From assembly GCF_032062105.1 (NCBI RefSeq), contig NW_026937595.1, positions 1-64,000 of the forward strand: 64,000 nucleotides of DNA, in the 5' to 3' direction. The position numbers and the translations under genes are program-made. The notes beneath the pieces are model-generated. The model searched no databases. It saw nothing but the letters and a program-made list of their open reading frames with translations, and was not told the origin of the DNA. The DNA is from Saccostrea cucullata. Lineage: Eukaryota. Shown here piece by piece: positions 23,301-44,300 of this stretch. Each line of letters starts with the position of its first letter. Position 1 is the stretch's first letter.

Positions 23301-26300
23301 GCTTTGCTTATATTAATACATGTTAATTATTTTAATGTAATTTTACGAACAATTATTATCCTCCATAAAATAGGACTATTCAGAAGTAGAAATTTTTGAA
23401 ACCAAACTACATTTTATGTTATCTCAACATTTATAGGAAAAGTAATGTAAATTTCATGCACTCTATATACATGTACAAACCATCCGTATTTTTTTCCATT
23501 GTGACGTCACAGTCTACCGAAACAGCTTGATGATGCAACAGAAGAATAACAATCCACACAATTTATGGACGATTTTATTAATCATAAAACAATAATGTTA
23601 TTTACTGACTAAATCTTTAGTCAGAAAAACTTTAGAGGAAACGTAAATTGATTATATCTTGTATATAAGTACCATTGTTAAGCAAGTCCGCATATGTGCA
23701 AAACACTCCGCATTTCATTTTGTATATAGCAACGCCATCCGCATTTTTTGTATATATAGCAACGTCATCCGCATTTTTTACTTCAGTAGATAAATTTACA
23801 TGCTTGATTGTTCTGATGACGACCGTCACAGGTCGAAACCGGTCAACAAAATAAATGTACTGCTGCATTCTCACGAAGTGTTGGTGATCTGTTTTTTACT
23901 TTTAGTTTATTATCAACTTAGGTCAGTAGAACACTAGGTGATTTATGCATAAATATCTTAATATGCAAATAAGAAGGCAATGGTGTATACCGTAAATCTG
24001 GAAATTTTTACATCGATTTTATTTTGCGAATTCGGGTCAAAATGCTGTTGATAAATTTTTACGTTTCAAAATTTTGCGAATGACCACTGCTTTGTTTACA
24101 TTTTCTTATTGGTAATTTATTTTTAAGAAAAATATTTTTGCGAATGCAATGAACTCGCAAATTTGCTAAAAATTATCTACAGCAAAAATTTCCAGATTTA
24201 CGGTATATTAAAGTACATAAAGAAACCCTCATAAAGTTTAGTTTACATGTATCATGTATAAAATCAAATTTTGATAATCCGAAACACTGTTGAAGTAGCA
24301 GAGAGTGCTAGATGTTTTGTTAGTTGACTAACCTTTGAGTCCCAGTCCTTGTTGAGGTAATAAATACAGGTGATGGCTCGGCCATCTTTGTTTGGATTAT
24401 CCACGTGACGGAGGTATCCGGAGGAAGGACCCGGATAACAGGCCACCATAGCCTGCAAACAAAAAACAAGAGGCCCACGGGCCTTATAGGTCACCTGAGT
24501 ATCATGCATCAACTTTCTAACCATTGAATGTGCTTTATGCCATGGCACTAACATTTTGAAAGGGGCACAATTGCTCATCATAACTGTACACTCAACATGC
24601 ATAGTTCAGTTACTCAATACTCATAGGCAGAGTAGGGGTACACAAAAAAAGAATATAAATGCTTGGTAGTGTAAAGAAAAGGAACAGTGCCTTTCCCCTA
24701 TTAATCTTTTACTTCACCCAATGAAGGGAAACAAGTTTTGCAAAGAGTACGTGGACTGGACTCACAAATTCAAATTTTTATAATGAACCTTGGGCGAGCA
24801 TTAATGTCTTAGGTACTTATTCTAATCTTTAAATACAAAGTGCTAACTAGATTAATGCTTTTTTTTTTGGGGGGGGGGGGGGGGGGTTGTTAATAAACAT
24901 CCCTCTGAAGATTTTTTTACTCATATGGAGAGGTCACCCCTTGCCAGTAGGAGGCTGCAAATTTATACCAAATACTTGGCACAAGCACCATTTAGCATTG
25001 AGGGATCTTTTTCATGCCTACACCTACTTCGACACAGGACCCAAGTTTTTAGGTCTCATCCATGTCCTGCAGTGGATTCAAACCTGTGACGTAAGGATCA
25101 GCTCTTTACTCCGCAACTCTTATAAAGAGCAGACGTACGCTCTAACCACTGCACCATGCAGCCATTTAAATTATTGAATACTAATAGAACAAAAAATATG
25201 GTATGTAAATAGGGTGAGACAAAGAAATACACAAAATATTTATAATTATACATAATTTATTAAGCTTACATTTACTCAACATATTATGATGTACATGTAT
25301 GCATTTATAAGGTAACCATAACATCTGTTTGGAAAGGGTAATGATAAATTATATTAACAGCTAAAATAAAAGAGCATATCGATACATTTCCTTATTTTAT
25401 AATAAATAGTACAATGATTTAATACTTGACCTCAATATTTGCACAATAGTCAGTTAAATGATAAAGAAATGTTTAATGACTACGTATTGCATTCAATCAT
25501 TAAGATGTGTCCAATTAAGTATCCTGAAGAAATCAATGGTATGATTTTAATTACATTGTTCAATTTTTTTTTCAATGATTGCTCAACAACTGTCTGAAAT
25601 TCCGTCATGAATTAATTGTACAATGTACAAAGCACTTTTCACTTTTTATCTAATAATACCATCTGAAAGAAGCAAGGTTTACCTCCCTTTACGGGCTGGC
25701 CATTGACCTGTTCTTTCCATTATACTTACCTTGAAAGTGTATGCTTTATGTTATAGGTAATTTCAGACAGTTAAAACATTAAATAGATTTCATGAAATCT
25801 TGAAATCATTTTTCTTAATTCAAATTTCAGTTCCCATTATTGATATTCATAGAATATGTTTTGGTGCATGCATGTGTTAATGCACGTACTTGAATTGGAC
25901 CACTTAGCAATATGTGTACATAATTTATATAAGTAAATAATTGAACCATAAAATTATTCTAATCTTTATAAAATATTGTTAAAAATATCATGAACAAACA
26001 AATGCTATACATGGAAAGTACACAAACATACAAAGTAAATTCTGTTACAATAGCATTTTTAAAAAAATGTGCCCTCAAAAAAAAAAAAAAAAAAAAAAAT
26101 GAAGATTACATAAAAATTTGCTGAATCCATTAAGCACTTTCATTAAGAATCTTATATCAAATATTTATATCACAAAAACTTATAACTTTAATATGCTATT
26201 TCATAATAGATGTATTTGAACTACTTTTTTAATCTTACATACCGAAATTGAAAAGAAAGATTAAAAGTAGTTCAAAGTCACCTGGATACATTTATCCAGA

Positions 26301-41300: not shown

Positions 41301-44300
41301 CGTTACACGGATAAACAGGTTGGACACAGTTCCTTTTTTGGGTAAGTATTACTATAAAAGGGAACTATTACTCTTTGCAGTAATAAAAAAAACATTACTC
41401 AATTCGGGCATTTTTGTCACATTTTTAAAATAATGCCTCTAATCCATTTAATAAATAAAAAGTGCATAAAAAATACGATGTGATGTGTTAAATCTTTATC
41501 AAACAAACCTCGCTGACCGCTAATACTTCCCCGAAAAAGGAAGTGTGCCCAACCTGATAATCCAACATGTAAAAATAAAATGCTACTTGTATCGAGATAA
41601 ATCTAACTAAATATATTCAACTTCTTTTTAAAACCATATCAACATAGTTAGGGAAAAACAATAAGACATATTATAACACAATAGAAATAAATTTATTAGG
41701 CCTACAAATTCGGAAAATGTGCAACGTACTTGACTAGTTCCACTTTGATGTCGCCACTTTAACTTCGTGACGAATGGAATCATACCATTCGCGAAAACAA
41801 ATAAATTTCAATCTTATAAAACGCTATAACTCATACCCACCGTTCCTGAAACAAAAATATAAACACAGGGAAAGCGTAACTATTAGAAAGACGAATATAT
41901 CCTCAGGCTCAGTCAGTGAAGTCTTCCTTCAAAATGGACGCTCGACAATGCGCATGCGTAATTGTCTAAATGACGGAGGCGTGTAAACAAACATGACCAT
42001 TCCGGGATTGTTTTAAAACTCAATCAACTTTTAAAAGGACTTTTGACTCGTGGACACATTCAAAATATATACATATATAAATCAATACACAAAGAATTCG
42101 AAAATACCAATCAGAAATTTTTAAGATTTTTTTTCAAAGAATTTATAATGTAACAACACATATATAATCAATGGAGCCCCACCCTAACACCAGAACCCCT
42201 GACCCAGGGGCCGTGAAATTTACAATTTTTGAAGAGGCACTCTTGATCATCATAACTATGTACTTGGTTCGTTTGTATATAACCCAGGAGCAGAGGAGTA
42301 GATTTTCAAAGTATTAATGCACTTTTACTATATGATATATAGCCCCGCCCTAACACAACCCCTGACCCTGGAGCCGTGAAATTCACAATTTTGAAAGAAC
42401 CACTCTTAGTCATTATAACTATGAACTTGGTTTGTTTGTTTTACACCCAGGAGCAGATGAGAAGACTTTCAAAGAATTAATGGACTTTTACCATATGATC
42501 TAAATAGCCCCACCCTAGCACCATAACCCCTGACCCTGGGGCCATGAATTTCACAATTTTGGTAAAGGACTCAAAGCTAATTACAATCATGCAAACAGTT
42601 TGACTGCTTGATGTCCAGGAGTGAAGAAGAAGATTTTTAAAGATTGCATTCATTTTAGTAGTTTTGGCCCCACCCCTCAGGCCCCTGGGGGGCAGGGACC
42701 ATGAAATTCACAATTTTTGTTCCCCTTCACCCATAGATGCTGTATACTAAATTTGGTTGTAATTGGTTCAGTGGTTCCAGAGAAGAAGCTAAAAATGTTC
42801 AAAAGTTTACGAACGACGTACAACGTACGACGTACGACGACAGACGAAAACGGATAGCAATAGGTCACCTGAGTTTACTCAGGTGACCTAATAACTGCAA
42901 ATAATGATAAGAATAAAAGACCTCATGGCCTGGGAAAAAAAGCTGGAAATTAGGGATTACATTAGAACTCATATCACAGCCTGTGGAAAAAATGCCTGGA
43001 AATCACAGACTTAATACATGTTATCAAAATACTATTGAAGAAGGAATTACTAACATATAAGGCAATTAAAATATAGAAGTCTCTAACAAGACTGTTAAGC
43101 TCTTCTGGTTTGCATTTAAAACAAGTAAGGAAGAGAAGCACTTGAATTTGAAACTATTGCAATAAATGGATTAATGAATCTAGAGTAATTGGTCCTTTTT
43201 GTGTCTTAATTTATTGTAATCATCATAATCAGATTACCTGAAAAACTGTAGGAGGTATAGAGTTTTGAAAGAAATTTCAAAGGAATTTTTCATTTTTAGT
43301 GACCATTCAGCAACATCATTCATCAAAAACCAAAACTACTACAAAGAATTATTACCATATATACTCGCCTATAAGTCGGTATTTTAGGAGTTAAATTTTA
43401 GTCCAAAAGTCTATGTCCGACTTATAGGTGAGTCATAAAAAGACATGTATTTTTCTGGATGGCGAATTGTTGTATTCTATAAACATTTTCAATAGCTATC
43501 GTTGAACAAAGTATTGATACATTATATCATTTATGTATTTTAAGATTACATAAATTATATGTATTTTATATGCACGTATTTAATAATTCTATTTTATTTT
43601 TAATCTTGAGAGGGCAGTATTTATTTTTTTATCATTTAAAGTTTAATATCGACATCATATCTTAAAATATTAATTGAAATCAGGTTAAAACATCAGAGCA
43701 TTTATTAGAAATTGTCATCTGATTCTTCCAAAAATTTGCACCGACTTATAAGTGGGTCAATGGCAAATCCCTGTAAAAAAAACCTCAAAAAGTACAACCG
43801 ACTTATAGGCGAGTATATACGGTATTCCCCCACTTGAAAAGTGAGAGGGTATACTGTAATCGGTATGTCTGTCCATCCGTCCATACGTCAGTCCGTCTGT
43901 TACGCTTTAGGTTAATAACCCATCTCTTATCCGCAACTCCTCTTTATACCACTGAGTGACAGTACCTCACAGTACCTCTAGTTCATCTAAGCATACTCTA
44001 CTTATGTGCCAAGTTTTAAAAATTGAATTCAGACCAAAACTGTAGGTTTGGATGAATTAAAACACTTTTCTACTTGCTCTTCTGGTCAGTGGTCTCTGAC
44101 CAGTGGAGCTTTGAAAATGGATTCCGAAAATAAGAAACATGAAAAAGTAAAGTTAAATAGGAAAAACTTGAATAAATGGGGTCCATGCATAGCCTGGAAT
44201 GATACATCAAAAACAGTGAATTATAAATAAGAATACTGTAAGTCCAAAACTGTTCAAATTATAAAAGATGATAGCAAAGAAATTTCTTTTTTGGAAAACA

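Follow-up and report, generated by a model that had tools for sequence, protein, structure and literature searches.

A very probable autonomous Helentron with the complete HINE architecture in an intron of an oyster EGLN1-like gene

Could a coding transposon in the intron of an oyster gene be the source of the enzymes that move the satellite-carrying, non-coding Helentron derivatives (HINEs) around it? The locus in question lies in a stretch of 64,000 bp of Saccostrea cucullata DNA (positions 1–64,000 of contig NW_026937595.1, assembly GCF_032062105.1), referred to here as the window. The window corresponds to contig JAVVLV010019732.1 of assembly GCA_032062105.1, with which positions 7347–64000 matched at 100% without gaps, and it contains no runs of N. 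An earlier reading of this DNA from its letters alone (the sequence-only reading) had described an intact autonomous Helentron of ~18 kb at 24461–42891. Our analysis upholds that description: it is very likely that 18,423 bp of the minus strand, at 24467–42889, constitute a complete autonomous Helentron, full-length, with a single open reading frame (ORF) and with its catalytic motifs and cis signals intact, belonging to a family defined by the 12-bp subterminal inverted repeat (subTIR) AGGTCACCTGAG. Only the outermost bases of the original span had to be given up, as 24461–24466 and 42890–42891 are flanking T's that lie outside the element. A mechanism for its movement is proposed below.

Ends, modules and polyprotein of the element

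Where does the element begin and end? Its ends were set where homology with independent copies stops and by an empty site in Saccostrea echinata, and the true termini are 42889 (5′) and 24467 (3′, finishing in ...GGCCTCTTG). Read in the element sense (the minus strand, on which all of its features lie), it starts after TT with AGGTCACCTGAG-taaa-CTCAGGTGACCT, continues with a GTCG-type microsatellite and then with a tandem repeat of 163–168 bp, and ends with ...CTCAGGTGACCT-ata-AGGCCCGTGGGCCT-CTTG, followed by TTTTTT. The 5′ subTIR occupies 42878–42889, its first base following TT at 42890–42891, and the identical 12-mer is present in Saccostrea and Pecten copies. The complementary inverted repeat (IR), CTCAGGTGACCT at 42862–42873, forms a hairpin with it across a 4-nt loop. 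With a 13-bp stem, an energy of −13.5 kcal/mol and a z of −7.9, a result that none of 200 shuffles equaled, the previously noted 5′ hairpin is real by folding statistics. The 3′ subTIR, CTCAGGTGACCT at 24488–24499, is the complement of the 5′ subTIR, and the perfect 14-bp match that had been claimed between the two ends was found as described, with ATAGGTCACCTGAG at both 24486–24499 and 42860–42873. The subTIR 12-mer occurs in five exact copies and in nine at ≤1 mismatch, compared with 0.16 expected.

The 3′ palindrome AGGCCCGTGGGCCT (24471–24484), together with the terminal CTTG, spans 24467–24484 and is followed by the T's of 24461–24466. What had been called a 3′ hairpin stands as a palindrome that is present and conserved, but its thermodynamic strength is not exceptional (z −0.8); its support is conservation across copies, in that the stems and the CTCTTG terminus are constant from oyster to scallop and the central bases alone vary. 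A T-run precedes each of the 10 5′ junctions examined, and all seven 3′ ends of families A and B finish with GGCCTCTTG followed by T. The ends thus carry the subterminal inverted repeats of ~11–15 bp and the short palindrome near the 3′ terminus that define Helentrons, and a TT or T-rich target without target-site duplication is seen at the junctions, in a nested insertion in a related copy (L005) and at the S. echinata empty site.

Between these ends lies the whole architecture of a HINE. The left module contains a GTCG/GTCK-type microsatellite at 42809–42850, the length of which differs among copies, and is followed at 42175–42643 by ~2.3–2.8 copies of a satellite-like tandem repeat with a 163–168-bp unit, which is collinear in three other copies (L001 and L004 of S. 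cucullata, the same genome as the window, and L002 of S. echinata). The coding element therefore itself carries the microsatellite and the ~170-bp repeat, as the earlier reading had stated. Two arrays of 146-bp repeats come next, one of three copies at 39227–39671 and one of seven copies at 35801–36817, just upstream of the ORF. The module order is the 5′ module, the 166-bp repeat, the 146-bp repeats, the ORF, the 3′ blocks and the 3′ end, so that subTIR, IR and microsatellite, satellite-like repeats, and subTIR with palindrome are all present in a coding Helentron.

The ORF (28356–35450) is a single uninterrupted frame of 7.1 kb and 2,364 amino acids (aa), and no further ORF of note was found inside the element. 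Pfam reports Herpes_teg_N at aa 194–343 (E 4.7e-8), DUF6570, Helitron_like_N at aa 968–1158 and PIF1 at aa 1662–1881. The Rep (HUH nuclease) domain at 31425–32549 contains HIH within aa 1150–1159 and the YxxxY motif YIVAY within aa 1327–1342. It is followed by a superfamily 1 (SF1) helicase of the Pif1 type at 29139–30467, which has the Walker A sequence GGAGAGKS and the Walker B sequence IIDE and matches Pif1 structures, and by a C-terminal AP (exo-endo-phosphatase) endonuclease at 28380–28991, with a Pfam match below cut-off but with intact N, E, D.N, D and SDH motifs. The HIH, YxxxY, Walker A and B, later helicase and AP-endonuclease motifs are all conserved in three relatives. The earlier claim of an uninterrupted 7.1-kb ORF with Rep, helicase and endonuclease motifs is confirmed by the Pfam matches and by this conservation. 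A polyprotein that joins a HUH Rep, an SF1/Pif1 helicase and an AP endonuclease is typical of Helentrons, the C-terminal endonuclease being their hallmark (PMC4067079), and all three domains are found here in one ORF.

The N-terminal part, aa 194–389 (34284–34871), is by homology and by its conserved Cys and His residues a VTD-type (herpes-tegument-like) cysteine deubiquitinase with predicted activity. Residues 196–389 match PDB 8ADD, the VTD of a zebrafish Helentron, with an E of 1e-21, and the motifs QCTCN and DSHSH are conserved in four copies (that of the window and its relatives). The VTD deubiquitinase family occurs in Helentron ORFs, molluscan ones included (PMC9741609).

Two in-frame tandem repeats lie within the ORF, at 33718–34077 (114 bp × 3.2, encoding a Lys/Arg-rich 38-aa unit) and at 35111–35228 (30 bp × 3.9), and the repeat-rich parts align in several registers between copies. 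The copy number of these repeats may account for most of the difference in length between this ORF and its relatives (2,364 compared with 2,452–2,490 aa). An exact-sequence database look-up of the ORF and of an exon of the host EGLN gene returned no identical record.

Copies at other loci and the empty site in the host gene

Do the ends belong to the ORF? The closest protein relatives are found in S. cucullata and S. echinata (83–86% identity) and in the scallop Pecten maximus (68%), and three of them are intact: L001 (JAVVLV010010281.1; 19.3 kb, 2,490 aa), L002 (20.0 kb, 2,470 aa) and L003 of P. maximus (2,452 aa). The loci are unrelated to one another, so that the ORF is not syntenic, as a domesticated gene would be. 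In L001 and L002, which were compared at both ends, the ORF is bracketed by the same 5′ subTIR, IR, microsatellite and 166-bp repeat and by the same 3′ subTIR and palindrome, the internal blocks follow the same order as in the window, and the similarity stops exactly at the ends. In L003, the comparison of which covers the 5′ end, the identical 12-bp subTIR and the same 5′ module stand upstream of the ORF. Because the same ends recur in this way, the ORF did not enter an old HINE as a separate insertion, which the sequence-only reading had named as an outcome that would refute it. The ORF has a dN/dS of 0.19 against the Saccostrea copies, a value that indicates purifying selection. L001 also lies inside a host gene, with an LRRK2-like gene model spanning the whole locus in the same orientation.

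Against Pecten, the synonymous sites of the ORF are saturated (proportion of synonymous differences, pS, 0.75). The subTIRs are nevertheless identical, and the termini have thus been conserved far past the neutral expectation. Horizontal transfer between oyster and scallop, which was considered in view of the 68% protein identity and the identical subTIRs, was rejected as unnecessary because of this saturation. In a complete Pecten HINE (L006) the 5′ end is again the same, and the 3′ end reads CTCAGGTGACCG-tta-AGGCCCtttGGGCCT-CTTG followed by T, with 11 of the 12 subTIR bases, the same palindrome arms and the CTCTTG terminus. The scallop Helentron (L003:2400–2430) and the scallop HINE (L006:17825–18778) share the identical 12-bp subTIR, a near-identical IR and a GTCC microsatellite.

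Was the site once empty? The host gene is of the EGLN1-like (HIF prolyl hydroxylase) kind, and the Helentron lies within its 36-kb intron 1, in gene orientation. The exons of the gene, which were placed by tblastn of the annotated protein rather than by a joined spliced model, are at 61428–60478, 24452–24333, ~19942–19802 and ~19199–19116; the first encodes the EGLN1-like N-terminus, the identity of which to the S. cucullata protein is 99.7%. Exon 2 (24333–24452, minus strand) starts 14 nt after the last base of the element, the intervening bases being TTTTTTGTTTGCAG. In the S. echinata orthologue (L008), exon 2 and the downstream intron are 91% identical from the T-run onward, and no Helentron end was found before exon 2. 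The 5′ flank of the window element aligns directly upstream of the S. echinata exon with a local score of 38.5, compared with 22.5 ± 3.3 (maximum 36) for shuffles, and the site is a T-rich tract with no visible target duplication. Judged by these alignments, the S. echinata site is the orthologous empty site, and the Helentron was inserted after the split of S. cucullata and S. echinata into a T-rich tract 14 nt upstream of exon 2, with no visible target duplication. The sequence-only reading had proposed to look for an empty site in other individuals or haplotypes; the one found is an orthologous intron without the element, alignable across the reconstructed junction. A paralogous empty site was found neither in the window nor in the fetched loci.

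The ancestral upstream intron sequence, probably including the branch point, is now 18.4 kb from the acceptor of exon 2, and splicing must therefore rely on the element's own last bases. The same intron of S. echinata (L008:24569–28751) contains a complete HINE of a sister family at 24569–25839 and, 62 bp past it, a 2.85-kb family-A HINE with ~9 repeat units (25902–28751). As the positions of the HINEs differ between the two species, the intron appears to be a repeated landing site. In the spacer upstream of the Helentron (window 43353–43824), two inverted repeats of 28 bp, which match at 96% and lie ~470 bp apart, give the appearance of a small miniature inverted-repeat transposable element (MITE); no match to it was aligned in the S. 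echinata locus.

Non-coding partners and alternative readings

Does the window also contain a substrate for such an enzyme? HINE-A (44806–46769, minus strand) is a non-autonomous element of 1,964 bp that has its 3′ end, its IR, its microsatellite and a ~166-bp repeat in common with the Helentron. It matches the Helentron at 54 of the last 60 bp and at 84% over the 631 bp of the repeat module that include the IR and the microsatellite (82–84% in the repeat). The sequence-only reading had placed the same ends on 44802–46769; the 3′ end, IR, microsatellite and repeat bear this out, but the outer arm of the 5′ subTIR is missing, the element being cut at 46769, and its other boundary had to be moved to 44806. 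Within the family the subTIR matches at 12 of 12 positions, and the last 60 bp of L001 and L002 agree with the Helentron at 50 and 52 positions, respectively. By the rule of Thomas et al. 2014 (PMC4067079), applied to these alignments, HINE-A is of the same family and subfamily as the Helentron, whereas the intronic HINE of S. echinata (46/60) and the Pecten HINE (44/60) are of the same family and another subfamily.

HINE-A is itself nested in a HINE of the sister family, the 3′ end of which is at ~44651. Its flanks (44651–44805 and 46770–46852) are fragments of the sister family's 166-bp monomer; after them comes the sister-family 3′ end, CTCAGGTGAGTG...GGCCTCTTG, at ~44651–44681, and the 5′ arm of HINE-A is missing at the junction. 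The sister family has the subTIR AGCTCACCTGAG and is represented by HINEs at 15138–16545, 55953–57430 and 4380 to ~5520, with 4–7 copies of the 166-bp satellite-like repeat. Position 3 is altered jointly in its 5′ subTIR, IR and 3′ subTIR (G to C, with the matching C to G), which supports the view that the complementarity is functional. A third variant is represented at window 54290–54323 by an isolated 3′ end, ATCAGGTGACCT-ttta-AGCCttaGGGGCCTTTGG, and no 5′ end matching it was found nearby.

Several observations weigh against a complete autonomous element of recent insertion. The Exo_endo_phos scores at the C-terminus of the ORF are below the curated Pfam cut-offs. Upstream of the junction, the empty-site alignment is only ~65–70% identical and gapped, and the comparison that speaks for insertion rather than loss is with S. 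echinata alone. Among the copies examined, no near-identical second copy was seen, the nearest relative being L005 (assembly GCA_004566355.1), which is 92.9% identical and frameshifted. Finally, HINE-A is old, 5′-truncated and 84% identical in the repeat module, and so was not recently launched by this Helentron copy.

Is the copy active? Of the substitutions possible in the ORF, 5.35% create a stop, and at an assumed indel-to-substitution ratio of 0.05–0.2, the chance that the ORF stays intact falls to 5% at ~0.2–0.4% neutral divergence. As the ORF is still intact in the face of such fast expected decay, a recent origin is favored. It is a reasonable reading of this intactness that the copy is potentially active, as had been proposed; the accompanying term "master", on the other hand, was overstated, since at least one other intact paralogue is present in the genome. 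That paralogue, L001 (dS 0.48), together with the lack of near-identical daughter copies and the age of the local HINE, makes it quite possible, though not the outcome that we favor, that the copy is structurally intact but silenced or defective in regulation, and that other paralogues, for example of the L001 lineage, supply the enzymes, so that it is one of several. The intact 7.1-kb ORF, the two perfect ends and an insertion that post-dates the species split speak for a working copy, with the proviso that they are no proof of expression.

A second doubt concerns the 146-bp arrays, which could have been acquired secondarily, as nested insertions or by capture from other HINE families, rather than being original modules. 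The repeat of 39227–39671 recurs outside the element at 50636–52328 and at a second place in L001, and L002 lacks both arrays. Yet both arrays are collinear in L001, where the second lies directly upstream of the ORF, and one of them, that of 39227–39671, is collinear in L004, from which it follows that they are transmitted with the element. No HINE ends flank the arrays, and when the surroundings of the external array (50.6–52.3 kb) were searched for inverted repeats that could mark element ends, nothing convincing was found. On balance we regard such a capture as possible but rather unlikely. The 146-bp repeats of all three places (35801–36817, 39227–39671 and 50636–52328) are rich in TCAAGGTCA, AAGGTCA and TGACCTTG, which resemble nuclear-receptor half-sites, and the subTIR itself starts with AGGTCA.

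The whole could also be a composite, in which an autonomous element with its own ends sits inside an older satellite-carrying HINE and the outer ends are foreign to the ORF. Nesting is common here, as HINE-A within another HINE and a nested 5′ end in L005 illustrate, and several kb between the 5′ module and the ORF are unalignable between copies. This reading is nonetheless very improbable: copies at unrelated loci of two Saccostrea genomes have their modules in one and the same order, the Pecten ORF is preceded by this 5′ module as well, a search of the element for a second subTIR set between the ORF and either outer end found none, and the homology with L005 continues without a break past the ORF into the non-coding part on its 3′ side. 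The nested 5′ end of L005 (9160–9377; AGGTAACCTGAG-caaa-CTCAGGTGACC) belongs to the family and is inserted in a T-run within the 3′ region of that Helentron; the corresponding T-run of the window, at ~24646, is intact. The L005 contig terminates in a poly-G run. Lastly, that the ORF is a domesticated Rep/helicase gene kept at a fixed locus for a host function has next to no probability, for although it is under purifying selection and in sense orientation in the host gene, S. echinata lacks the element in the orthologous intron, the loci of the copies are unrelated, the transposon termini are retained and conserved, and fragmentary copies are numerous in each genome.

Known systems, proposed mechanism and significance

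How does the complete autonomous Helentron compare with known systems? Pairs of Helentrons and HINEs have been described in Drosophila (DINE-1), the mite Metaseiulus and Culex (Thomas, Vadnagara & Pritham 2014, PMC4067079). The oyster element resembles them in its Rep/helicase/AP-endonuclease ORF, 12–15 bp subTIRs, IR by the 5′ subTIR, microsatellite, optional central tandem repeats, 3′ stem-loop, insertion into TT or T-runs without duplication, and non-coding partners that share its ends. It differs from them in the phylum of its host, its subTIR, its larger size (18.4 kb), its VTD domain and its three internal tandem-repeat arrays. In architecture the element also resembles the Cg_HINEs of Crassostrea (Magallana) gigas (Vojvoda Zeljko et al. 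2020, PMC7492417), which have a left flank of subTIR, IR and GTCY/GTCK microsatellite, central satellite-like repeats of ~166–170 bp and a right flank of subTIR and palindrome. All of the Cg_HINEs are non-coding, whereas here the coding element itself bears the whole architecture. The subTIR string of the window was not found in the readable supplement text of that paper, and the likeness to the 11 named Cg_HINEs is one of described architecture only. The authors of that paper could relate no autonomous Helentron in Repbase to the Cg_HINEs, and among the later papers searched none ties one to them. Of the Repbase consensi for C. gigas, Helitron-27_CGi matches the left flank of Cg_HINE_6 in its first 77 bp.

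The short, interspersed bivalve "MITEs" of the pearl/CvA type, which were later re-classed as non-autonomous Helentrons, also have central repeats of ~160–170 bp, which are related to the Cg170/HindIII satellites (as cited in PMC7492417 and PMC11136912); the likeness is by description, and unlike the oyster Helentron these elements have no ORF. With regard to the protein, parallels are found in the zebrafish Helentrons DrT1 and DrT2 (Erven et al. 2022, PMC9741609; 8ADD), in which an N-terminal herpes-tegument-like deubiquitinase is likewise part of a Rep/Hel/AP-endonuclease polyprotein. Their host is a vertebrate and their VTDs are active, whereas the activity of the oyster domain is predicted, and the oyster polyprotein has one VTD copy and no separate OTU hit.

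How might the element move? We propose that the Rep domain would nick at the 5′ end, between T and AGGTCACC, and that the helicase would peel off one strand up to the 3′ subTIR and palindrome, which would act as the stop signal. The peeled strand would then be pasted into a T-run, possibly with the assistance of the AP endonuclease. All DNA that lies between ends of this kind, for example HINEs with their repeat arrays, could be moved in trans, and short satellite arrays would in this way be seeded genome-wide. The mechanistic model is Helraiser, a reconstructed bat Helitron and experimentally studied rolling-circle transposon, which shares the HUH Rep, the Pif1-like helicase and a 3′ hairpin termination signal. 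Helraiser differs in being a canonical Helitron, with 5′ TC and 3′ CTRR ends and insertion between A and T, and it has neither subTIRs nor an AP endonuclease.

What would such an element mean for bivalves? The terminus conservation from oyster to scallop, together with the joint changes in the sister family, has probably identified the nucleotides that are recognized. It is conceivable, though doubtful in this full form, that the satellite-carrying HINEs of pteriomorph bivalves are driven by this autonomous lineage, that it has kept the 12-bp subTIR, the palindrome and the CTCTTG terminus since before the oyster–scallop split, and that it is still transposing in S. cucullata, one copy having come to lie in the acceptor-site region of a HIF prolyl-hydroxylase gene. 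The insertion 14 nt from the splice acceptor of an oxygen-sensing gene is a natural test of how a host gene tolerates a large intronic transposon. Bivalve genomes are unusual in that their satellite DNA is for the most part dispersed, in short arrays that non-coding Helentron derivatives carry. A coding element with the entire HINE architecture offers a specific candidate pair of enzyme and substrate and, with it, a concrete candidate for the source of the enzymes that move the HINEs.

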